Assembly (NCBI GenBank): GCA_023334545.1
Contig: JAADVB010000085.1
Span: 1-64,000, forward strand
Reading direction: 5' to 3'
Length of the DNA: 64,000 nt
From: Salisapilia sapeloensis CBS 127946
Taxonomy: Eukaryota > Protista > Oomycota
The notes under the pieces are model-generated. The model made no database searches. It saw only the letters and a program-made list of their open reading frames with translations, and was not told the origin of the DNA. Position 1 is the stretch's first letter, and each line of letters begins with the position of its first letter. Both the position numbers and the translations under genes were made by a program. Below are positions 369 through 63,900 of this stretch, piece by piece.

Positions 369-3300
369 CTACTGCTGCTGCATCTTCTTCAATCGCTCGC
401 GCAAGTTACTCGACGTCGTTCCTTTCGTCTTCAATCTCGACATAGTCTGTTGCAACGACGACATCTGACTCTCCACATCTCTCCTCTGCGCCCCAAATCG
501 ACTCTTACTCTCTTCCTCCACCTCCTCCTCCTGTGCAAACTCATACCCCATACCAGCAATCACCTGCCTTACTCTCGATCCAGCAGGTAAGTCCTTCACA
601 GATTTTTCAAACGTCGACGCACCAGAGTCAACCAGACTCTTCGCCATGGTCTTGAGCACTTGCTCCAGCGTCTCCTTTGCTATCTGACCACTAAACATGT
701 CGTTCTGAGGCAACGTATAGAAGGAATAGTGCACTTGCATCAACACGCCATACACATCGACGCTATCAAATGGCCGATCACTCGCTGCTTGTTTATCTGC
801 AAGCGACACCAGCAGTCTCCCGACGATCTGGTCGAGTGTATCTTTCTTCAACAAGTGTCGGTACTGACTACGACTCGTGTACTCCCCGACTTCATTCCGT
901 ACAATACGCTGCAAGGCTCCTAGGACTGACGGGAAGACGATACGAATCGCTAGTTTCTCCTGAACGACATGCAGCATCTTCAACAGCGCCTTGTACACAT
1001 ATACGAGCTGCTTCTCCTGATACGCCGTCGGGCCTTTCGGAGCGACCTCGGCAGCAGACTCAAGACGTTCATCGAGAACCTTGTGGCATAGCTCCAACAC
1101 CAGACGTTCCACTGCATACCGCTGCAGATTCTCTGCTTGTGGACTCAGTAGCACCGTGTTCAACGTCGCGAGACTTAGCGACAAGATGCTAAAGTCCAAC
1201 GGAGCATCAGTGTCGCCTCCAGAGAAACCAGCGTGGACACAAGTACACAGCGCTTCGACGATACGATTCACATGCTGCGCAACAAAAGTACGTTCCGAGT
1301 CATCACTTGGAGCTGTTAACAAGGCAAACAACGTCTTCATCGCATTCTTCCCATCGACAAACTCCTGGGACGAGTGATCCACCACGTGTGTCCCATCGGA
1401 TGTGACCATATTCGTCAGTGGGGTGAAGATCATGCCTTCCACTTGACTCATGAACGGGTCTTCTACGCTATCGACTTGAGGCTTCTCTGGTGTCGTAGCT
1501 ACCGGACGACGCACTGGAGATGGTTTCGGCGGACTTGGACGAGGAGGTGTCGACACCTCCTTGGTCTCCACGCCTCGCTTGCTCTTCATCCTCAACTCAC
1601 GTTCGATCGCATCAGCCAACGCCGCATTCGAGACGCCAATAAACTTGTGGAAAGCATCCACATCCATCGAGCTTTGGTCGTACGCAGCAACCACAAGGTC
1701 CAACGCTGCGACTCGAAGCGCGCTTTCCTTGGCGCCAGCCAAGTTGGCAGCATCTCGAAGTGTCTTGCGACCTAGAGCGTTCGTCCCGTGCGCATTCACA
1801 AGTTCCACACACAGACGTAGACACTCGACGCGACTGTTGATGCTCTTGAGCGACTGGAAACCTTCGTCCAAGTACCCTGACAGCTTCTCCGTCGAGTACA
1901 CTTGCGTCACGAGGCTCAGGACTTGTCGTATACGCACGAGGAAGCGCATCTTGGGCTGTCCACTCTGTTGCAATAGCACAGGGAGCAAAATCGCAGCTTC
2001 CGCATCCTGCATCTGCGTCTGTTCATCCACTAGAAGCTGCAGAAGCTTTACAAGCAAGTCCAGTAGCTTACCTAACGCCTGTGCATTCGAGTCCGCAAAG
2101 CGTAGAGCACACCATTTGAACGCCATGTCCATGACCGAGAGCATCTCTTGTGGTTGGGACGAAGCACAGCCTAATAACAAGTCGTTGCCTTCCATCAGCG
2201 ACTTGTCCGAGAAGAGTTTATCAGCCATCTCAGATGACAGCAATGGTCTCCACTCCGTCTGGAGTTCATTCCGTCGCTTCTCCACGTCACTTTGATCAGA
2301 CACATCCACCGTCCACTTGACATGCGCTCCTCGAGACATACGAGATGCTTTATTCGTGCTCATACGTAACAAAGTGTCTTTCGAAGCAGCATCCGATGGA
2401 CGCATCGACTGCGTCCGACTCTTCAAGCCAGGTGCCGGGATCTCTGACGACGCAGCTGCCTTGACAGGCATACTCGTCGTGCGCGTGATAGGCGAAGGTT
2501 TCTTATCCGGAGACGTCTCCAGTACCTTTTCTAGCATCGGCTTCAAGCTCCTCATCTGCGCAGGCTTCAGGTCTCGACACCCATCCATCACCGCCTTCTT
2601 CCCCACTGACGCTGCTACGATCTTGAGCACCGTCTGCGCCTTGCTTCTCGTATCTGCATTCTTATCACCTAACGACTGCACGGTCGGTGTCACAAGTACC
2701 GATAGATCTAGTTTCCCACACTTGTCCAAGTGCGTCGCAAGCCAACCAAGTAACTCGCCTCGACCAACGCTATTCGCTAGACCTTCACTAGTCGCTGGCA
2801 ACAAGCTTTCGACACATACAGACTTGGTCTCTTTGTCATGCGTCACCCACTTGTGGAGCGTATCGATCGAAGCTTGTTGCATCGACTTTTTATTATCTCC
2901 TACGCCATGGACAATGCTACTGCCAAGTGCTTTCGACGCTCGATGAATGTCCGGTCCGACAGACGTCGCGATGGACCCTAGCACCTGTGCTGCACGTACT
3001 TTAAGGTTCGCATTCGAGTCGTTCAGACGAGGTTTCATCGCACGAAGCAAGTCCTGGACGCTCTTACTAAACTCAATCGCTCCTCCAGCATCATCCAATA
3101 CGCTCTGGACGTTATCCATGGCGGCTGCACGTCTTTTCCAACTCGCAGGTCCGTTCTCGTCTTTCAATCGATCAAACAACTCTTTCGTCAAGTGCTTCGA
3201 GATATCCACACGACCAAAGACCGGTTCAGCGTCTGCTTTCGGAGGACCTTCCTCTCCCTTCACCTTCCGCTTCACACTCGCCTGTGCCTTCTCCGGATCG

Positions 3301-6188
3301 TACCCAACGCGCTCAAACTCTGCTTGCACGAGTTTCGCTAGCGCTGGTTTCCACGAATCTAAATTCAAGATCGGAAGGAGATTCGGACCGAGCTGCGTGT
3401 ACATGGCGCCTAGGAGAGAGATGGCTGCACCTCGGACCTTTGGATTCGAAGAGTCCGTCGCTTGTGGTCCTTTCGTAAAGTCCACGATGGCGCGAGGACC
3501 GCACTCGGTCAGTCCAAACTCTTCCACCACTTGCTTGATTGTCATAAGCGCTTCTAACTGCGCTAACGGAGCACGCACTTGACCTAAATGCTGCATCATA
3601 CAACCGAGCGTATAGGACGGACTCGTCGCTTCACACAGCGCGAGTTTCATGGACCGAATCACGTCTGCGGCTTTCTTATCGCCAGCTTTATCTGTCGCAA
3701 GTGGCACGACGAGCGTCACGACGGACTTGGGGAACTTGCCTGGCGTATTCTCTGCCAACGTCCCGATCGCTTGGAACGCACAGCGTAAGACATTGATGTT
3801 ACTTTCCTTAAACTGCTTCACGTTCTTTCCCAAGTACAACGTCAGTGCTTCAATAACTTTCGGCGTCAATTCCTCCGAATGTTCTCGAGCGAAAGACTCT
3901 AACGCTTCAATCGCAGCCTTGCGTTCCAGCCACTTGGAACTAGCCAATCCAGCTTGGACTTGAGCAAAGTCGGGGATACCAAGACCTTCGACGACTCCAT
4001 CCGCTTCCTCCGCTTCTGTCGACATGGCGATAGGAGAGTACTCTGTACTCCCACCGCCTCCACTCGTCTTAGTTGGTGCAGCAGACTTCTTTGCTGGTGG
4101 CTTGGAACCGAAACGAGATGACGGACCTTTCGGTTTTTTAATCTCCGGCGCTTTCGTCTCCGGCGTCTTGCTCTCCATGTCAACGTCTGTAGTCGCCTTG
4201 GCTTTTGTCTTTCCAGAACTCGGACGAGATGATGTGGAGCTAGCTGCAGATGCAGGACGAGACGTCGCAGGAGAAGAAGACGCGTTCCCATCCAACTGCT
4301 GCTTGACAGTCTTGAACGCACGTGCGTTGGAGGTCTGGAGTTTCTCCATCAACGGCTTGACAAGCTTCGGAGCATCCTCGGAGCTCTTCAAGAGTGCGAC
4401 AAAGGCTTCTTGTCCAGCCTTGCGTACCGTCGGATCCGTGTCATCTATACCTACGAGCATCAACTTGCCCAGATCCATTAGGACAGCCTTGTCGCTCACA
4501 TTGATCATAGGCACTTCGACGCATCGTCTCAAGAAGCCGAGCGTCTGGGCACGAGCCGGTGGCGCCTTGTTTTTACTACTATCCATGGCTACTTTCAAGT
4601 CGTCTAGCATGAGATCGATACCCATGCAATGCATCAGGAACATATCCAACGCTTTATTCGTCGGTTGCAAGACCGATACTTTTTTGTCCGAGAGTTTTTT
4701 CAATAGATCTGAGAACAACTGACGTGCATGTGGAGAAAAGTTCTTGCGCAATCCATCCGCCAAGACACTCATCACTTCAATCGCTTTACCCTGGACATTC
4801 ACATTCGAATCGCTTAACAGTTTCTTTAAAACACTCACGAGTTCATAGTAATCGCCATTCGTAAGCTTTGGCACTGGACCTGCTGCATCCACAACTGCCT
4901 GTAGTGCCTCCATACGGATACTCCACTTGGCTTCTTGAATCTGTTTGTAAAACTGCAGTTGAGAAAGTTTAGATAATAAATCCACTTCGGCTGTAAACTC
5001 TCGAGCGTCCATCACTGGTGCTTTCGTCTGTGCTTTCGTCTCCACTGCTTTTGCGCCACGAATAAACTTGGTCGCTTCAGCTTGTCCAGGTGTAATGTCC
5101 TTCGTTTGGTCCGCAAACTCTGTCTGTTGCGCTTGACGAAGGTTGTCAACAATGCCTTGGACGACGGCAGGTCCAATCCAACGATGGAGTTCCACCAGAA
5201 TCTGCATCGCGACTGGACGCACACCATTCACGGTCGATTCACACAGCTTTGGCAATGCTTTGACGATCGATTGCACCGGTACTACCTTTGGTCCGTACTC
5301 TTTTAAAGCGTCCAATACACACTGGAGACTAGCTGACGCTACTTTGGGTTTCTTCCCGCCTGCAGCTTCTAACAGTGCTTCGATCGTCGGGGTGGCGGCT
5401 CCAGCCGCTACGAAATTGTCTACTAACTCTGCACTGGCTGCCTGAACGCTGGATCGACCGGCTAAGCCTTTATCTGCCACGCGCTTGATGATAGGAGGAA
5501 TGATCGTTTCGTCCACATCCTGCACATTCTTCGCGTACGCTAAGACGGCTCGAATACCTGGCTCCAACGCACCTGCAATCGGGTCCTGGCACATCTTTAC
5601 GTAAAGTTCTAAAAGAGGTCGAACATCATCTGACTTGAGGTCTGGCCTGTCAGCTAGCTGCATGGCACTTTCATACGCGCTTTTACGTGTCATCCAATTC
5701 TTTTCCTTGACATTTGCAACGATTTCATCTAATGACATCATAGATGTGGTGTCTGTAGCAGATGCAGACTTAGCCTCCGTTGGTGGAGCTTCTGATGGTG
5801 GATCGGATGACGCAAGATCGAGCGAAGGCAAAGCACTAGGTGTGGACTGCACAGCTGGAGGAGAATTTGCGACTCGACTCACAGGTGCAGGTGGAGGAGC
5901 CTCCATATTAACGTCCTCTGTCTCTGTAGGCGCCTTACGTTGCGCTGGGATTGGAGGCGAGTTCGCGACCGCCGGCTGTCTCGCCGCAGGCAATGGCGGA
6001 GACCTCGGAATGGATTGTGCAGGTGGCTCTGGAGCTTGGCTAGTATCCTCTTCTTCCGCCGTTTCCTCATCATCATGATTAATTGTAGATTTAAACGCCC
6101 GCTGCACGTTCAAGAGGTCTGCGATGTCTTCACCCGCACAAAGTGGACAAGTGCAACTCATCGTCCGAAGACATGTTTGTGTGCTCAT
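369..6188 (-). CDS. CKAP5: XMAP215/ch-TOG/MOR1 family TOG-domain microtubule polymerase (1939 aa, single exon)
   Basis: Repeated TOG/HEAT blocks with the conserved WxxR tubulin-binding loop (NWMTRK, KWSIRM, KWLERK, SWKRRA), low-complexity basic linkers and a C-terminal helical domain. Confidence 0.93.
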   Translation of the reverse strand: MSTQTCLRTMSCTCPLCAGEDIADLLNVQRAFKSTINHDDEETAEEEDTSQAPEPPAQSIPRSPPLPAARQPAVANSPPIPAQRKAPTETEDVNMEAPPPAPVSRVANSPPAVQSTPSALPSLDLASSDPPSEAPPTEAKSASATDTTSMMSLDEIVANVKEKNWMTRKSAYESAMQLADRPDLKSDDVRPLLELYVKMCQDPIAGALEPGIRAVLAYAKNVQDVDETIIPPIIKRVADKGLAGRSSVQAASAELVDNFVAAGAATPTIEALLEAAGGKKPKVASASLQCVLDALKEYGPKVVPVQSIVKALPKLCESTVNGVRPVAMQILVELHRWIGPAVVQGIVDNLRQAQQTEFADQTKDITPGQAEATKFIRGAKAVETKAQTKAPVMDAREFTAEVDLLSKLSQLQFYKQIQEAKWSIRMEALQAVVDAAGPVPKLTNGDYYELVSVLKKLLSDSNVNVQGKAIEVMSVLADGLRKNFSPHARQLFSDLLKKLSDKKVSVLQPTNKALDMFLMHCMGIDLMLDDLKVAMDSSKNKAPPARAQTLGFLRRCVEVPMINVSDKAVLMDLGKLMLVGIDDTDPTVRKAGQEAFVALLKSSEDAPKLVKPLMEKLQTSNARAFKTVKQQLDGNASSSPATSRPASAASSTSSRPSSGKTKAKATTDVDMESKTPETKAPEIKKPKGPSSRFGSKPPAKKSAAPTKTSGGGGSTEYSPIAMSTEAEEADGVVEGLGIPDFAQVQAGLASSKWLERKAAIEALESFAREHSEELTPKVIEALTLYLGKNVKQFKESNINVLRCAFQAIGTLAENTPGKFPKSVVTLVVPLATDKAGDKKAADVIRSMKLALCEATSPSYTLGCMMQHLGQVRAPLAQLEALMTIKQVVEEFGLTECGPRAIVDFTKGPQATDSSNPKVRGAAISLLGAMYTQLGPNLLPILNLDSWKPALAKLVQAEFERVGYDPEKAQASVKRKVKGEEGPPKADAEPVFGRVDISKHLTKELFDRLKDENGPASWKRRAAAMDNVQSVLDDAGGAIEFSKSVQDLLRAMKPRLNDSNANLKVRAAQVLGSIATSVGPDIHRASKALGSSIVHGVGDNKKSMQQASIDTLHKWVTHDKETKSVCVESLLPATSEGLANSVGRGELLGWLATHLDKCGKLDLSVLVTPTVQSLGDKNADTRSKAQTVLKIVAASVGKKAVMDGCRDLKPAQMRSLKPMLEKVLETSPDKKPSPITRTTSMPVKAAASSEIPAPGLKSRTQSMRPSDAASKDTLLRMSTNKASRMSRGAHVKWTVDVSDQSDVEKRRNELQTEWRPLLSSEMADKLFSDKSLMEGNDLLLGCASSQPQEMLSVMDMAFKWCALRFADSNAQALGKLLDLLVKLLQLLVDEQTQMQDAEAAILLPVLLQQSGQPKMRFLVRIRQVLSLVTQVYSTEKLSGYLDEGFQSLKSINSRVECLRLCVELVNAHGTNALGRKTLRDAANLAGAKESALRVAALDLVVAAYDQSSMDVDAFHKFIGVSNAALADAIERELRMKSKRGVETKEVSTPPRPSPPKPSPVRRPVATTPEKPQVDSVEDPFMSQVEGMIFTPLTNMVTSDGTHVVDHSSQEFVDGKNAMKTLFALLTAPSDDSERTFVAQHVNRIVEALCTCVHAGFSGGDTDAPLDFSILSLSLATLNTVLLSPQAENLQRYAVERLVLELCHKVLDERLESAAEVAPKGPTAYQEKQLVYVYKALLKMLHVVQEKLAIRIVFPSVLGALQRIVRNEVGEYTSRSQYRHLLKKDTLDQIVGRLLVSLADKQAASDRPFDSVDVYGVLMQVHYSFYTLPQNDMFSGQIAKETLEQVLKTMAKSLVDSGASTFEKSVKDLPAGSRVRQVIAGMGYEFAQEEEVEEESKSRFGAQRRDVESQMSSLQQTMSRLKTKGTTSSNLRERLKKMQQQ

Positions 6189-54639: not shown

Positions 54640-57600
54640 TCAGCGTTGGTTCTCCAATCGTTCAATGGCAAATCGAATCATATAGATCCAATTTTCCACC
54701 TCTGCCTCGCTCTCGACAGCCACATAGAACGCTCGTCGCTGGCTCATCAAAAACCGACCTTTAGTCCACTCCACCACCTCTACTTTGAAGCAGTGGTCCC
54801 GTCCTGCCAGCTCTGGGTCACAAGCTTCCACTCGTGCATGATGTAAGAATAGAGCTGTGCTTCTTCCTAGTTGAGACCCGCTCATTTCTTCCGTCTGCAG
54901 CAACAGCCTCGAGTCTTGTAGCACTGCGTATCGACGTTTCCACATCTTGGCATTCGCTAGTCCCTTGACATTAAGTTTCGCGAAGAAACTGCGGAACTTG
55001 CGGACGTTTACATGTCCAGACTTGAGTCGTTGGAACGTCGGTAACGTTCGTACAGGTGATCGTGACGTATGAGTTGCATTCAACGCCTCAGGAGACGACG
55101 TTCCACTACGGGACGAGTCAATCATCTGGATATCAACACGCAAAGCAATGTGCTTCTTGGCGTTCATCCGTTCACTAAAGAGCATTCGCAACTGCTTTTC
55201 ATGCTGCTCTCGCGCATCCGTCACGCGCGCCTGGAGCTTATCTACTTGACCACATAGCATCTGACCTCGCACAGCATCTTGCATGAACCCATGACCAAAC
55301 TCGAATTTACGTCGAAGGCCAGTAATCGCATGTGCCTCTCGCTTCACTGGTCGTATCATGCCGAGTCGCTCCAACTCTTCCAAGTCCTCTGAGAATTTGT
55401 TCGCATGCGCCTTGATCGGACACGCTTCACGCAGTATCTCGTCATCAAACACAGGTCCGATGACACTCGCTGTCTTCATCAGTATGCGTTGGGAAGCCGT
55501 CAAAGTGTCCAGCATACTCGCCAGTATGCTCTTCACAGCCGCAGGTGGATGCAACGCGACACAGTGCTTTAGGTCAGGTGAAGCGACTTGAGTGTGTGGT
55601 AAGAACAAGGACAGAACTCGATGCTTGTGCTTCCCGTCCTTACTCTTCGTCGGCGTGCTGCATCCAGTCGTGTGTTCCAAGCTAGGTTTCCGCGTCGCCG
55701 AGAGGGCGTAGCATCCACAGCAATGCCGCACTTCATGTGCCGATCCACCAGCAATCTTACGACGGCAAGCCTGCGGCGTACACGCTTCACAAAAGACATA
55801 TCCACAGCATTTACATCTTCTCTTCTCCTTCGTTTTCAAAGGAACGTGACAATGGAAACACGAGTGAGCTCGATGCTTATCTCCCCATGGCTCCTGCACT
55901 ATCAACTTACAAGTCTGTCGCTGTTCATCTACTTGGACGACTCCTTGGTTCCGCAAGTCGTTCACCACCTCCTTCAAGAACAAAGGACTGCCTTGACATC
56001 TAGATACAAGCAATTTCAAAAGATCAGCAGGGACACTCTGTACATCCAAGAGTTCTCGTGCTAGATCTTCCACTTCAGCTGAACATAAGGCTTCGAGATA
56101 GACGTGCTCACTCGCATGCAACTGCCGCAGTGCACGTAGTCTCTTGCCGAATGAACTAGACTCTGTATGTTCATTCAACGCTCGAGCTGGTGGACGTGTT
56201 CCGAGGACCACGAGGCAATTGGTAAAGTACCTCGCGACGATCGTTGCGACTGTCCAGGATGCAGCATCCAAGTGCATCGCGTTATCCAGACAAAAGATAG
56301 TCACTCGTTCCCGAGACATGGCATGCAGAGCACACAGGAAGAGGACACCTCGGAGGTCTAGATCGTCTGGTGTCCAGTCCAAGTCGTCCTGGTTCTCATC
56401 CGAGACAGACCTCTCTCTCCTCCCTCGTTCCAAGTCCGCTTCCAACAACTCCATAAACCACGAAGCTAGCTCTCCTTCTGCTTGACTAGTATCCCTCTGG
56501 TTACCAGAACTCGACTCTCCTGTCGTGTCCTCCATGTCGCTTCCAAAGATAGGAGACAGGACATGCGCGTACTGGATGAGCGTCGTATTCGGAGCAGACC
56601 CACTGATGATCTGTCTCTTCATGAAATTCGCGACACGTGCTTTCCGCTGAGCTTCCGTTTCTTCCTTGAGCTTCCTTGGAGACCTCTTATTGGGAACCTC
56701 GCTCTCTTCCGTTGCTGCTTGTGCCACAAGTTCAGCCCAGACAGCGTACGGCTGTCGAGTGGAGAACGCACTCGCTGTAGCTTGGAAGACACGATACCCT
56801 CCTGCCTCTGGACTCGCCAGGGTCGATCGCAACAGGACGCTCTTGCCAATACCTGCTCCGCCCTCTAGCACAAAGGCTCCTCCAGGACTATACCGATTGA
56901 TCCGAGAGCTCTTATCAAGTAGAGCTCGCCGGACGTTGAGGAAACTATCGCTCATGATAATAGCGTCCGCATCTAACGACGTCTGCTGCTGCGTACGACG
57001 ACTGAGCTTAGTTTGAGCTTCGCGCACTTGGATGCAGTGCATGGCTTCCAATAAATTACTGATCTGCTTCGGCTTGCTTTGGGATGCTGGAAGTGCTACG
57101 GCAACGCTCCTATCTCGTACGTTCGTCTTGGACGCAACGAGGTAGTCGACGAGGATGGACATACGAGGGTATGGTCGATGGATGTTAACGCTGTCGTTCT
57201 TGCCTTTCACCATGATCTGCGGACGTGACTCGAAGAGAAGTGCGTGAGACGACCGACGCTCGGTCGTTTCGTCTGTGATCACACCGCCATTCTCCGTCTT
57301 GGCCTTTTGCATCAAACGAGCACTTAGATTGACAATGTTGCCTAGGATCGTGTACTCTCGTCTGTTGCCTTGGTGTCCGACGATCCCACAGAACGCAACA
57401 CCAGTTGTGACACCAACTGACGCTCGGAGTTGGAGTGGCGCTAATGCGGCTCGGATAGCGAGACTTGCCAAGATGCCACGTACAGGATCATCTTCGTGTG
57501 CGACTGGTGGTAATCCAAAGGCAGCGATGACCGTGCTGCCTTTATCGTCCACTAGGAACTTATTTATCGTGCCTTCATACTCATATACGCACGCTTGGAC

Positions 57601-58611
57601 ACGTCTGAAGGCTTCATGCAGCCGATGGACACCTGCGACGTCTAGCATATCCGCTAGATCTTCATCGCCAAAGCCAAGATTAATAAAAAGGACCGTCACG
57701 TCTCGTATTTCCGATCCCCAGAACTCGTCCTGAGCATCTAGATATGGCCACACAGCTCGAGGGACATACTGCTGCATTCGTAAGTGTAGCTGAGCATCGT
57801 CACGTGTGAAGGACGCACGCCGAGAACAGATTTTTATAGCTTCACGCACACTTTTGATCTTGTAAAAGTTTCCAGTGGATGCCTGGATGGCACTCGCATC
57901 GACAAACTGACGTAGATGGTTCCAGCAAGCAGAGGAACAGATGACGTCACCAGGTTCTGCCTGGTGCTCAGACTGGAACGCTTGCTCTAGTGCTGGACCG
58001 ACGGCAATGCACTCGATACGATTGATTGCACTATCGGACTCACCTCCGAGGTGAGCAAACGTTGCGGCACCGAGACCGATGCCCATCTTGACACTCAGGA
58101 CGACACCTGGTGCTAAGTCCGCTTCGTGCAAGTAGCTCTGAACTTTTAACGCTGTCTGGACACACCGTCGTAAGCACGTTTGCAATGAATCGTGCTTGTT
58201 CTCTCGCCAAAAGACTAGGATGGCATCTCCTGCGAACTTGAAGACGTCTCCACCGGCACTCGAGATGAGACGTAGGAGCTGCTCAAAGTAGGAATTCAAG
58301 TGCTTGCTGAGCATCTCTGCGCCGACGGGACCTCTTGCAGCGAGTGACTCAGTCATGGCCGTGAAGCCTGAAACGTCAGCAAACATGGACACGACTTGGG
58401 CAGTGTGAGTTTCTGGAAGTTGCGGCGTTTGCGTCTGTTGCTCCAAGTGACTGCGGACGATTGCTGGTAGGTAGGCCGTGAGACGCATGTCGAGCTCTTT
58501 GTGCATTCCTAGCGAGTGACTAAGCGGACTGGACGACTTGACAGGAGACTTGGCCGTCGTCCGTGGCTGTATCGACACTGGGGACGGTATGGATATGTCT
58601 GAGGCAGGCAT
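54640..58611 (-). CDS. Soluble (ADCY10-like) class III adenylyl cyclase fused to P-loop NTPase, FYVE-like finger and C-terminal PH domain
   Basis: C1: MFADVSGFT, VFKFAGDA. C2: LFINL, INKFLVDDKG, EYTILGNIVNLSARLM. Walker A GGAGIGKS, GSPLFL, Zn finger CFHC..CKCCGYVFCEAC..CCGC, PH WKRRYAVL..HCFKV..ENWIYMI. First ATG at 58611. Confidence 0.88.
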   Translation of the reverse strand: MPASDISIPSPVSIQPRTTAKSPVKSSSPLSHSLGMHKELDMRLTAYLPAIVRSHLEQQTQTPQLPETHTAQVVSMFADVSGFTAMTESLAARGPVGAEMLSKHLNSYFEQLLRLISSAGGDVFKFAGDAILVFWRENKHDSLQTCLRRCVQTALKVQSYLHEADLAPGVVLSVKMGIGLGAATFAHLGGESDSAINRIECIAVGPALEQAFQSEHQAEPGDVICSSACWNHLRQFVDASAIQASTGNFYKIKSVREAIKICSRRASFTRDDAQLHLRMQQYVPRAVWPYLDAQDEFWGSEIRDVTVLFINLGFGDEDLADMLDVAGVHRLHEAFRRVQACVYEYEGTINKFLVDDKGSTVIAAFGLPPVAHEDDPVRGILASLAIRAALAPLQLRASVGVTTGVAFCGIVGHQGNRREYTILGNIVNLSARLMQKAKTENGGVITDETTERRSSHALLFESRPQIMVKGKNDSVNIHRPYPRMSILVDYLVASKTNVRDRSVAVALPASQSKPKQISNLLEAMHCIQVREAQTKLSRRTQQQTSLDADAIIMSDSFLNVRRALLDKSSRINRYSPGGAFVLEGGAGIGKSVLLRSTLASPEAGGYRVFQATASAFSTRQPYAVWAELVAQAATEESEVPNKRSPRKLKEETEAQRKARVANFMKRQIISGSAPNTTLIQYAHVLSPIFGSDMEDTTGESSSGNQRDTSQAEGELASWFMELLEADLERGRRERSVSDENQDDLDWTPDDLDLRGVLFLCALHAMSRERVTIFCLDNAMHLDAASWTVATIVARYFTNCLVVLGTRPPARALNEHTESSSFGKRLRALRQLHASEHVYLEALCSAEVEDLARELLDVQSVPADLLKLLVSRCQGSPLFLKEVVNDLRNQGVVQVDEQRQTCKLIVQEPWGDKHRAHSCFHCHVPLKTKEKRRCKCCGYVFCEACTPQACRRKIAGGSAHEVRHCCGCYALSATRKPSLEHTTGCSTPTKSKDGKHKHRVLSLFLPHTQVASPDLKHCVALHPPAAVKSILASMLDTLTASQRILMKTASVIGPVFDDEILREACPIKAHANKFSEDLEELERLGMIRPVKREAHAITGLRRKFEFGHGFMQDAVRGQMLCGQVDKLQARVTDAREQHEKQLRMLFSERMNAKKHIALRVDIQMIDSSRSGTSSPEALNATHTSRSPVRTLPTFQRLKSGHVNVRKFRSFFAKLNVKGLANAKMWKRRYAVLQDSRLLLQTEEMSGSQLGRSTALFLHHARVEACDPELAGRDHCFKVEVVEWTKGRFLMSQRRAFYVAVESEAEVENWIYMIRFAIERLENQR

Positions 58612-59646
58612 CTTATCACCGGTGCTTTGCGTAGTATGTGAGAAAGATGGCAAGTGTGGTGCTTCCTCAAGTGCTAGATCGACAATGTGCTCAGATGATC
58701 TGGGCAGTATGACGAAAATACTTCTGAAAGTCGTGAACGGAACCACAGTTCAAACGGAATTTTTTCAGCGTTCGTTTTCGTTTTTATCGACTGAAGATGC
58801 AGCTACTTGCGGCGCGTTCAGCAGCGACGGGATGTTCGTAGAGCTGAAAAAAGATTATAGCGCTGCCCAGGACAGTCGAAAATAGAAAATGGAAGCTTAA
58901 GCGTACGTTCCTCGTTGCTCGATCGCCTTTTGTTTCTTGTCGGAAGATGCCGGGGACTGTTTAACGCTTGCAAGGGCGTCGAAAGATGGTGCTTGATGGC
59001 GTGTAGCAATGTCGAAATCTCCTTTGTGTGGCTTTCAGTACCCAAGTGTAAGTAGCTGCTGTCGTCCTTATCTCAATGCTACGTTCAGATGGCGTTGACC
59101 GGTCGATGTACCTTCAGCTGGTACAGTGCACGGGGATGGAATAAAAGGAATCGAAGGAATGCTCCGTGAAGGGGCACCAACGCACTTCAAGAACGAAAGG
59201 ATCGAGGAGACTTCCGATTCACTTAAGTTCAGTATAAACGTCTAAAGTGAACCCATTCAAGTCAGTACCACGCATGTCAAGCGCGAATGCAAGCTTTCGG
59301 AAGGACATATAGCGTCCTCTACACGCACTTAAAAGGCTACATGCTATTAGGATAACAGCTATGTCCTAGAAGAATAATATAATGAAACGGAAGTAGCAAT
59401 AGCTTCAGCTATTCTTTCGTTTAGTGTCGTCACTTTGCATGCAGCTTTCGAGTGTCGGAGCTTGATCTTCGATATCCGTTCAGTCATGTCTGGGCATACC
59501 TTGACGTTTGGCCTTCCAACAAACATCTACGGAAACCTTGCAAACGAACGACAACGAAAGGCGACGATCGACATAAAGTAGATCTTGATAATCCAACGCC
59601 ATACGAACGCAAGTCAATACTCGCCAATTCTGACTTGTTCCTTATC

Positions 59647-60612
59647 TCAACTACGTCGCCATGCAGATATCTCGTCCTTGGCTTCTTGCGAAGGTCCAAC
59701 GTGCTCATGCTCGAACTCGTACCGGATGCGACAGCCTTGTATCCCACAGTCAAAGTCAGGTTCCTCCGGTTCGACATCCGCTTTCGGTGTTTTAGGAGCT
59801 TTCGGAACGCCCGCCTCCACTCGCGTTTTCGAAAGGACATTGCACATGTGTAGCCAAGGTAGAACACGAGCTTCGTAGAATGTGCTCGCTTCTTCTGAGA
59901 AAGCGGTTGGAGGCACAGAACATGTATCAATGAGCCTTCCATCTCGAAACGCAGCTACACTAGGTCTACTATGCACTTTTAAATCTCGCAATTGATCCAT
60001 GTCACGACTATTCTCAAGACGAGTAGCAACTGTATAGAACTTTGTCCCGAGGTGTGTACGAGCTGTGGCTGCGATGCAATCATGGAGAGATTTGAGCTGT
60101 CCGTCCGAGAGTTCATGACTGTGAATGACACAGATACGAGGGATGGAAGGCTTTTGTGTCAATTCTTGGACGAGTTGGTCCACAGATAAAGAAAGGATGA
60201 TGCCATACCCTTCTGAAGCATGCTGGACTGCCTCTTGCAACTGCGCACGGCGAGCAGCCATGAGCTCATCCATGCCAAAGTCATCGTCACTAAAGTCCGA
60301 GTCGCTGTCTTCAATATCCAGCGTGTTCAAAGCAAGACTCGCAGCCTGTACAACATCCGTATGTGGCTGTTCGACCGTAGTAGGAGGTTCAAATAGCTGT
60401 TGTCGCTGTCGAACGGCACTAGAGGACGGATCATGCTTTGTCAATAGACTCTTGAGTTTCATCGCTTTATGGTACTCGTGCTCATCCCGTTCGCAGCAGG
60501 AAGCTAGCGTCGGGTCGAACGCCAAGTACTCTGCGTCATGCTCATGCCTATGTTCGTCTGAAGACGCTCGTGCCGCCGCCGACGCACTTGACCCCGGTAA
60601 CGTCGTTGCCAT
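59647..60612 (-). CDS. Phosducin-like / thioredoxin-fold protein
   Basis: DSDFSDDDFGMDELMAARRAQL, GYG, RICVIH, ARTHLGTKFY, PSVAAFRDGRLID: the phosducin-like helical plus Trx layout. Confidence 0.7.
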   Translation of the reverse strand: MATTLPGSSASAAARASSDEHRHEHDAEYLAFDPTLASCCERDEHEYHKAMKLKSLLTKHDPSSSAVRQRQQLFEPPTTVEQPHTDVVQAASLALNTLDIEDSDSDFSDDDFGMDELMAARRAQLQEAVQHASEGYGIILSLSVDQLVQELTQKPSIPRICVIHSHELSDGQLKSLHDCIAATARTHLGTKFYTVATRLENSRDMDQLRDLKVHSRPSVAAFRDGRLIDTCSVPPTAFSEEASTFYEARVLPWLHMCNVLSKTRVEAGVPKAPKTPKADVEPEEPDFDCGIQGCRIRYEFEHEHVGPSQEAKDEISAWRRS

Positions 60613-60913: not shown

Positions 60914-63900
60914 ATGGCTATGACGCGCCAGCTACTGCGTATGCGAGTCCCGACGTCATCGGCGCGCATGCTGCAGCTCCAGCGAGCTACGTATCGACCA
61001 AAGACATCTTCAATTGAAACTCGCTCACTCCTTCGTCCTTGCATCCAACAACGGTGGAAGAGCTCGATGCCACAGTACATGCATGACGAAGAAGCTGGAC
61101 AGGATGCTCCAGTACGTCGGCTACAAGTCGCCGACTGGGCAGACCGTGCACGTACGATGCCACCTCGGTCAAAACTCCAGCCTCAATCGAGCGATTTAGT
61201 CTTCACAGAGGAGCTCGGTAGCATTGAGAAGGTGTCTAAGCCAGCTCGAAACGGCATGACGAAGGAAGAAGTGGATGAATGGTTAGCTGAGTACGAGATT
61301 CCGGAACAGGAGCTAGCGAAATGTAAGACGCAGGATGAAATCGACCACGTACGAGAACTTTATGCTCGTCAACTACGTCTCGAATGCTCCATCTATGAAA
61401 TGGCGATGGAAAAACGAGAAATGGCGACGAATAGAATGAAAGAGATCGGTCGATCGTCTGAGTCTGCACCTGGCCAGCGACTGATTCGAAGCTGGATGGA
61501 ACCTGCGCGGGACTTTATCGCGAATGAACAGAAGCGGATTAAAAATGGTCTGCGCAGTACCGACAGCAACGTCTACGGTGCAGCGCTCATGCTTCTACCG
61601 CCCGACATTATCGCCGCCACTGCCATGAACGTGATGCTGAATCTCTGTCTAACGGAGCCGAATGGCGTCAAGTTCATCAAACTAGCATTGGGCATGGGAA
61701 AAGCTGTGCAGGATGAAATCATTGTCAAGAAGGAAGCAGCAGCGAAGCGGAATGTCGTGGCACGCAATTTGCAAGGAGAAGATCCGAGCGAACGGCATTA
61801 CCTCGCGATGACGAGGAACATGGAGAACGACAAGTTGATAAAAAAGATGTATGAGTACAACGAGGACGTTGGTGGATGGGATAAACGCATTAGTCTCAAG
61901 GTCGGTGCAGCTATCATCGACTGCATCCAACGCTCGTGCTTCGTCCCGAGCTCGGGCGATAAGAAGGAGCTGGCGTTCGAGCATGACTACGTGTTCGAGC
62001 GCAACCGTCGGTCTGGTATCATCAAGATCCACCCCGAAGTCCCAGCCATGATCCTCGGTCGATCCGTCGGTCGCAACGTCTTACCCTGGACAGCACGATA
62101 CCTTCCGATGCTCGTGCCGCCAAAGCACTGGGATGGCGTCGTGAACGGTGGGTACTTGAAACTCCACACGAAGGTGATGCGGCAGCGAGACCAAGCGTGG
62201 CAGATGGATTGTGTCAAGCGCGGCCACATGCCCCAGCTCTATCGCGCGCTGAACGCACTAGCGGAAGTCCCGTGGGTCGTGAACAAAGACGTCTTGAACG
62301 TCGTCCTGCAGGTGTGGGAAGACGGAGGTGGATTCGGTGACTTGCCGACACGTACGAACATGCCACAACCAGAGTGGAAGGACGAATATGCAAACGATCC
62401 GGTCAAGCGTGAAGCGTTTGATAAGAGACAGAAAAAGGTATTTATATCTCTTTTTTATTTCAGAGAGCATCATAATCAAGCCCAGGAGTTGCTCTCCTAC
62501 AGCTTCTGGGTTCAAACTGTATGCTAAAGCAATGGACGAGTGGAGATATGACAAGAGGATAGATCCTTTCAACTCGCTAGTTGGGTATCTGGCTCTTCCT
62601 CCACCTTCCGACATGCCTCCATCTCTTGTATATTCATTCATTAACTTTATCCTTCTATAGGTTCAACAACATAATGCTGAGCTCCATTCTCTCCGATGCG
62701 ATACACTCTACAAGCTCCAAGTAGCAGAAGAGTTCCAAGATGAAGAAGCCATCTACTATCCGTACAATATCGACTTTCGAGGTCGAGTGTACCCCGTGCC
62801 TCCGAATCTTAATCACCTTGGCTCTGATCTCTCTCGCTCGCTCCTCATCTTCCGCGACCGGAAACCTCTGGGAGAACAAGGTCTCCGGTGGCTCAAGATC
62901 CACCTTGCCAACGTCTTTGGTGTCGACAAGTGCTCCTTTGATGAACGAGTGCAGTTCGCGGAAGAGTCGATGCACAAGGTGAAGCAAGCTGCCGAGAATC
63001 CGCTTGGAAATGACGAGTACAGTCGGTGGTGGCAAGAAGCAGACTATCCGTTCCTTGCCCTCGGCGTCTGCTTTGAACTGAAGCGAGCGATGGAGTCGCC
63101 GGATCCGACCAAGTATGAGAGCAACATCCCGGTCCACCAGGACGGATCCTGCAACGGTCTACAGCACTACGCCGCCCTCGGTCGAGACAAACTCGGTGGA
63201 GAGCAAGTCAACCTTGTCCCGGGAGAACGACCTGGAGATGTCTACGCCGGAGTGGCGAGACAAGTGGTGGAAAAGGTCGAGAGAGATGCGAACATTGAGC
63301 TTCCGTTCGATGGTCCACCACCAAAGGCCGAGAAAATTACCGAGCTAGACACAGAAGAAGAGAAGGAACGGAAACGGAAAGATAAGGAGCTTCTGGATCT
63401 CTACAACAAGAAGGAAGCAGCGAACTTTTTACTCGGCACGATCACGCGTAAGGTCGTGAAGCAAACGGTCATGACGAGTGTCTACGGCGTGACGTACATT
63501 GGTGCTCGAAAGCAGATCATGGCTCGATTGGAAGAAGTGTTTCTCGATAAGGATGAACTGCTCGATCAAGAGATGGAGCAGAAGATCTACCAGGCAGCAT
63601 GCTACGCGGCGGACTTGACCATGCAGAGTATGGGCGACTTGTTTACGTCGGCAAGAGGCATCATGGCGTGGCTCGGCGACTGCGCTGCAAAGGTCGCACA
63701 GAATGGTCAGGCCATGTCCTGGGTGACGCCACTCGGTCTGCCGGTTGTGCAGCCATATAAGCGAAACTCATCGCTACAAATCCGTACCAAGGTCCAGAAC
63801 GTCCTGCTCGTCCTTTCGGAACAATTGCCGGTGGCGAATGGCCGACAGAAATCTGCCTTCCCACCGAACTACGTCCACTCTCTGGACTCGACACATATGC

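Follow-up and report, generated by a model that had tools for sequence, protein, structure and literature searches.

A conserved box H/ACA snoRNA in an intron of the oomycete mitochondrial RNA polymerase gene, with a predicted pseudouridylation target in large-subunit rRNA

In Salisapilia sapeloensis, an intron of the gene for mitochondrial RNA polymerase appears to encode a box H/ACA snoRNA of about 150 nt that would guide pseudouridylation of large-subunit (LSU) rRNA at the position numbered U2999 in the rDNA unit used here (L055). We place the probability of this reading at roughly 85%, and the snoRNA most likely directs this one pseudouridine in LSU rRNA. A first-pass annotation of the analysed DNA (64,000 nucleotides, hereafter the window) had proposed an intron-encoded box H/ACA snoRNA at this place, and the proposal now has strong support from covariation and conserved boxes in 11 orthologous introns. 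This comparison with relatives, made at the level of sequence, is the decisive evidence for the predicted snoRNA. The features of the intron and of the RNA are collected in Table 1.

Table 1. Features of the host intron and of the predicted snoRNA (window coordinates)
Feature	Positions	Strand	Basis
Intron of the mitochondrial (T7-like) RNA polymerase gene, snoRNA host	62438..62660	+	GT..AG; transcript contigs; relatives' introns
Predicted mature H/ACA snoRNA, about 150 nt (predicted ends)	62465..62616	+	Conserved block, from first lower-stem base to ACA + 3 nt
5' hairpin lower stem, 5' strand (62466-70, extended by 62471-72)	62466..62472	+	Pairs with 62518-19 and 62521-25
Pocket 5' strand AAUCAA, predicted to pair with rRNA 3' of the target U	62474..62479	+	Invariant 12/12; complements UUGAUU, LSU 3001-3006 (L055)
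5' hairpin upper stem (62480-91 with 62500-11) and apical loop	62480..62511	+	Covariation
Pocket 3' strand UCAA, predicted to pair with UUGA just 5' of the target U	62512..62515	+	Invariant
5' hairpin lower stem, 3' strand	62518..62525	+	RNAalifold, covariation
H box AAAGCA (ANANNA)	62526..62531	+	Same position in relatives
3' hairpin, conserved in shape not sequence, without conserved pocket	62533..62609	+	Ortholog folds
ACA box, followed by UGC to the predicted 3' end at 62616	62611..62613	+	ACA after 3' hairpin in 11/11 complete sequences
Likely branch site CAUUAAC, 16 nt upstream of the 3' splice site	62639..62645	+	Predicted by reading the sequence

The host intron follows codon 508 of an open frame that starts at 60914. 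Exon 1 of this frame encodes the N-terminal domain of a T7-like mitochondrial RNA polymerase, and Pfam RPOL_N is found in all relatives. Past codon 508 (62437) the frame is meaningless; from 62661 it is in frame again and encodes the conserved polymerase domain. Transcript contigs of 3.2-3.4 kb from four public runs, representing two organisms, carry the exon junction 62437/62661 with exactly 223 bases absent. They confirm the 223-nt intron that had been placed in the polymerase gene by the first-pass annotation; it has GT..AG ends and is real and spliced. One of the two transcript organisms is identical to the window and the other is ~3-4% different over the compared bases. The differences in this second organism (runs X5 and X6, window positions 61400-63700) are mostly synonymous-looking transitions, and it has the same exon junction.

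An intron is found at the same codon in 11/11 relatives. These orthologous introns are all long, measuring 225-327 nt where recovered whole; the Phytophthora megakarya contig ends inside the intron. Motifs of the form CUAAC, CUCAC and CUGAC in the relatives' introns resemble the likely branch site of the window. As a separate observation, gene order upstream of the polymerase gene is shared between the window (54640-60612) and the loci L002, L006 and L009, from Phytophthora and other relatives. Two genes are conserved there: one encodes a guanylate/adenylate-cyclase domain together with FYVE and PH domains, and a small one separates it from the polymerase gene.

Folding the intron reproduces the hairpin-hinge-hairpin-tail arrangement described from the window letters alone. 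A 5' hairpin with a large internal loop is followed by a single-stranded AAAGCA, a second hairpin, ACA and then UGC, so that both the ANANNA box directly after hairpin 1 and the ACA triplet after hairpin 2 are found where they had been reported. In the window fold the upper stem of the 5' hairpin pairs 62479/80-91 with 62500-11/12 and the lower stem pairs 62466-70 with 62521-25. Between the upper stem and the H box there are 14 nt in the window; in relatives this spacing is 13-16 nt. The stability of this fold is within chance on the plus strand (z = -1.66, with 12 of 200 shuffles as stable), and the minus strand gives z = -0.87; the comparison with shuffled controls that had been suggested for the intron does not set its fold apart, and it is conservation, not fold energy, that validates the observation.

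For the comparison, orthologous loci were fetched by homology to exon 1 as the sole query (34-57% identity). They come from Phytophthora megakarya, P. kernoviae, Saprolegnia parasitica, several Logan assemblies and two metagenome scaffolds. The same element is present in the orthologous intron of 11 other loci, oomycete or related, extending from Phytophthora to Saprolegnia and to a more distant relative. Two strands, AAUCAAG and UUCAAACU, are invariant across the orthologs. The upper stem, by contrast, differs in almost every lineage yet always pairs; 10 of the 13 counted pairs are changed on both sides across species, with 87% of cells paired. At the fourth pair of the lower stem, lineages have U:A, C:G or A:U, and the extension of this stem, in which C62471-A62472 pairs with U62518-G62519, is C:G to U:A in L008 and A:U to G:U in L131.

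Over the whole 5' hairpin alignment (11 sequences), 89.9% of cells pair, a share that drops to 30-38% once partners are shifted by 1-3 columns; 11 of 19 pairs are changed on both sides, and the covariation score is 0.343 versus 0.126. None of 500 shuffles reaches the observed values. RNAalifold, unaided, recovers the same 5' hairpin stems. A covariance model of the 5' hairpin and H box yields one match per locus and none elsewhere in 229 kb, and it matched a twelfth ortholog, left out of model building, at E 4e-18. The alignment of orthologous introns proposed as a check by the first-pass annotation thus finds both covarying stems and conserved H and ACA boxes.

The H box position in relatives is occupied by AAAGCA, ACAGCA, AGAUCA, AGAGCA, AAAGUA or ACAGUA. 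The ANANNA consensus is satisfied in 10 of 12 sequences, and L001 and L010 carry AGAGCG, with G as the last base, a deviation that is tolerated in these two lineages. The ACA lies 1-5 nt past the 3' hairpin in all 11 complete sequences, the window included. We further note that the apical loop of the 5' hairpin (window 62492-62499; L001-L011 and L131) holds a CC(C)YAC-like motif in nearly all sequences above a variable stem, with one alignment column invariant. This motif could be a protein contact or provide extra complementarity.

The comparison also redraws the guide pocket. The first-pass annotation had assigned the pocket strands to 62471-78 and 62513-20, which is right in part; 62471-72 pair with 62518-19 as an extension of the lower stem, and this extension is conserved and compensated. 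This leaves AAUCAA(G) as the 5' strand of the open pocket and (U)UCAA as its 3' strand. The longer pocket that includes the CAG/CUG bases finds no such site in rRNA, and CAG/CUG is better explained as lower stem. The target of the form 5'-ACAGUUUG-Psi-N-UGAUUAUG-3' predicted earlier is likewise absent from the rRNAs of the oomycete-like rDNA unit L055.

Oomycete rRNA was found by scanning metagenome contigs for the oomycete 18S/ITS1 junction motif, and the choice of rDNA contigs rests on a 19-nt motif that we take to be the oomycete pattern. L055 is a complete SSU-5.8S-LSU-5S unit, confirmed with Rfam, and carries the oomycete-type 5.8S motif; it belongs to a metagenome relative and is not Salisapilia's own rDNA. 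In the oomycete-like metagenome rDNA the intergenic spacer contains two 5S genes, which share the strand of 18S-28S (5447-5565 and 6082-6200 in L055; 6212-6330 and 6847-6965 in L017).

We scanned SSU, 5.8S, LSU and 5S rRNA in the manner of snoGPS, with an upper stem, a distance of 13-16 nt to the box, and contiguous pairs flanking an unpaired UN. By number of pairs, LSU U2999 is the top site, alone or tied, with nine of ten guides; with L008 it comes second. No other site was recovered with all ten. U2999 lies in domain V in the context UUGA-U-U-UUGAUU, which in longer form reads CUUGA-U-U-UUGAUUUUCAG and also CUUGA-U-UUUGAUUUUCAG. In the predicted duplex UUGA pairs with UCAA and UUGAUU(UU) with (AG)AAUCAA around the unpaired UU, giving 4+6 to 4+8 bp. 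The consensus guide, with the geometry supported by covariation, forms 12 bp with U2999, a count equalled by 3.4% of dinucleotide shuffles. The window's own guide forms 4+6 = 10 bp, which is not significant alone (29% of shuffles equal it). Position 62473 is U in the window and G in its nine closest orthologs, and the guide of the window species is the weakest of the set because this U breaks both a G:C pair of the lower stem and a G:U pair with rRNA. All eight stramenopile LSU contigs that reach the U2999 site have it unchanged, and the pocket bases that never vary coincide exactly with those pairing with invariant rRNA bases. A weaker recurrent match, SSU U688 (4+5 bp), is found in eight of ten orthologs. 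The match UCAUUUGAA-UA-UUUGCUAC, which recurs 25-fold, was dropped and is read as the antisense strand of the LSU gene.

Placing U2999 in other organisms depends on its distance from the A-loop. It lies 206 nt 5' of the A-loop G of UGUUC in L055; we take the human A-loop G to be Gm4499, and the spacing from 4293 to 4499 is then 206 nt. By count, we presume that the yeast equivalent is 2716. Human Psi4293 is visible in a 60S structure (PMC11724314) and is Psi4263 in the older 28S numbering, which is the first target of SNORA2A/ACA2A (28S-4263; PMC6466398, Table 1). Pocket 2 of Arabidopsis snoR97-2 is assigned to 25S Psi2707, given as homologous to human Psi4263/ACA2 (PMC2685112, Table 3). U2999 of L055 thus corresponds to the position of human 28S Psi4263 and Arabidopsis 25S Psi2707, in a mapping that rests partly on the position assumed for the human A-loop. 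The yeast table lists Um2724, Um2729 and Psi2735 and nothing at 2716 (PMC5699541). The modification at this site is therefore known in human and predicted in Arabidopsis, whereas yeast lacks it. A review of Arabidopsis, human and yeast modification and its supplements (PMC8351944) did not list the site under any of the numbers and names tried.

The 3' hairpin presents a different picture. It forms in all ten orthologs folded, from different sequences, with shuffle z of about -3 to -5 in five of ten, weaker values in four including the window (-1.37), and 0.03 in L001. Between L004 and L005, compensatory changes can be read by eye in its basal stem. The first-pass annotation had called the pocket of hairpin 2 ambiguous; the orthologs show no conserved pocket there at all, as the basal 10-14 bp are nearly continuous in most species and leave no pocket at the canonical distance. 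A scan of rRNA with the 3' hairpins gave no site predicted by more than three orthologs and none that is convincing.

Two candidate targets of the 3' hairpin were considered, of which the first is rejected and the second is given a low probability. In H/ACA guides the target U lies 14-16 nt from the H or ACA box. The hairpin was considered as a guide for the second SNORA2 site (U3018 in L055), and the UUCGU present in some orthologs is only ~10 nt from the ACA. The 3' hairpin of the window can also form 7+9 bp (16 pairs) with SSU U1314, equalled by 2% of shuffles; here the distance to the ACA is 12 nt, the two strands pair with each other in the minimum-energy fold so that a 6-bp stem must open, and the other orthologs lack the match. 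We take U1314 to be yeast U1298, 8 nt from the known Psi1290. The count starts from the yeast landmarks Um1269, Gm1271, ac4C1280 and Psi1290 (PMC5699541). The 3' hairpin probably serves RNP assembly and stability only. It is a remote possibility that it has been re-aimed lineage by lineage, in the window at SSU U1314, which would amount to rapid guide turnover on a fixed scaffold.

Comparison with known RNA families yields likeness in the pocket without family membership. Rfam at gathering thresholds gives no match anywhere in the window, so that the Rfam check proposed for the intron returns no family at its gathering score. Under permissive settings the window gives weak full-length matches to SNORA14 (the best, E 0.38), SNORA2 and SNORA44, and the orthologs L002 and L009 give no match to an H/ACA family at E <= 10. 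Membership in SNORA2/SNORA34 (RF00410) was rejected, with 16.9 bits for the window against a gathering score of 70 and no match in these two orthologs. The 5' pocket strand of the Rfam SNORA2 consensus is GAAUCAAG, as in the oomycete RNA, and this shared strand explains the weak SNORA2 match in the window.

The resemblance to SNORA2/ACA2 extends to box class, intronic location, the combination of the GAAUCAAG 5' strand with a UCAA(G/A) 3' strand in the 5' hairpin, and the LSU uridine predicted as target, human 28S-4263 (PMC6466398). SNORA2 differs in its host gene and in having a second target, 28S-4282, 19 nt downstream, for which the oomycete 3' hairpin has no matching pocket. The likeness of the pockets may reflect homology or may merely be imposed by the shared target. 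Arabidopsis snoR97-2 is likewise an H/ACA RNA with a pocket assigned to 25S Psi2707 (PMC2685112), and is likened here by target assignment, not by sequence; the plant RNA comes from an intergenic cluster and has its pocket in the second hairpin, whereas the oomycete RNA comes from a single intronic gene and has it in the first. Within oomycetes, intronic H/ACA snoRNAs have been predicted with snoGPS in ribosomal-protein genes of Phytophthora infestans (PMC4696810). These are also intron-hosted pseudouridylation guides, but they lie in 5' introns of ribosomal-protein genes and not in the polymerase gene. In the literature searched, no H/ACA snoRNA is described in a mitochondrial RNA polymerase gene. 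The CAB box UGAG is absent anywhere in 10 of 11 sequences, the window included, and a role in Cajal bodies is unlikely for lack of this box.

Intron-encoded H/ACA guides are the rule in many eukaryotes, and the known pathway suggests how the RNA would be made and used. After splicing of the host transcript, exonucleases would trim the debranched lariat down to the snoRNA, with dyskerin/Cbf5, Nop10, Nhp2 and Gar1 on both hairpins and on the H and ACA boxes presumably protecting it. The 5' pocket would then pair with LSU rRNA on both sides of U2999, and this pairing would place the uridine at ~15 nt from the H box, where it would be isomerised to pseudouridine. Across the oomycetes sampled, the RNA has remained in this single intron of the polymerase gene.

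Three other explanations bear on this interpretation. That the structure is a chance fold in an unusually long intron might be read from the modest energy of the window and from Rfam matches that stay below threshold, the best at E 0.38; conservation with compensatory change over 12 sequences and the out-of-sample match of the covariance model speak so strongly against it that we give it next to no credence, and the comparative sequence data already refute it. The element could instead be a conserved intronic structure that regulates splicing or expression of the polymerase gene and never becomes a stable guide RNA. Its retention in one intron in every sampled lineage would fit such a role, as would the fact that the RNA runs found provide spliced transcript contigs only. 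A regulatory element would, however, have to mimic by accident two hairpins, an ANANNA hinge and an ACA after the second hairpin, together with an internal loop 13-16 nt from the H box whose invariant bases are complementary to rRNA, which makes this explanation very improbable.

The remaining alternative accepts a genuine H/ACA RNA and questions its target: the 5' pocket would guide another substrate (an snRNA, another rRNA site or an mRNA), with the match to LSU U2999 being coincidental. The insignificant pair count of the window guide leaves room for this, the target scan covered rRNAs only, and the recurrence of SSU U688 in most orthologs supplies a competing rRNA site. Against it, the best site of the consensus guide is a position with a known modification in human and a predicted one in Arabidopsis, where the guides have the same pocket sequence; the exact correspondence between invariant pocket and rRNA bases would have to be fortuitous, and there is no CAB box to send the RNA to Cajal bodies. 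We consider a different substrate unlikely, though the least improbable of these alternatives, and retain guidance of LSU U2999 as the preferred reading.

The first-pass annotation had also suggested that the snoRNA links modification of cytosolic ribosomes to mitochondrial gene expression. This suggestion rests on co-location, and intronic snoRNAs occur in many kinds of host gene. It is very doubtful that the snoRNA is held in the polymerase intron because its output is coupled to host transcription. Were such coupling true, modification of a uridine in the peptidyl-transferase region of cytosolic ribosomes would track investment in mitochondrial transcription.

The arrangement itself is ordinary, and the finding leaves the understanding of snoRNA function unchanged; what is new is this particular RNA, the target predicted for it, and the finding that from Saprolegnia to Phytophthora it has kept its place in the gene for the mitochondrial RNA polymerase. 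The presence of the snoRNA would account for an intron length put at three to five times the usual, and gene predictors should not take this intron for coding sequence or for an assembly error. Oomycetes include major pathogens of crops and fish, and to our knowledge their snoRNA repertoire is barely described. The RNA reported here adds a well-supported, previously unannotated H/ACA snoRNA family to this group, and the specific rRNA pseudouridine that it predicts bears on the age of a modification present in human, predicted in Arabidopsis and absent from yeast.
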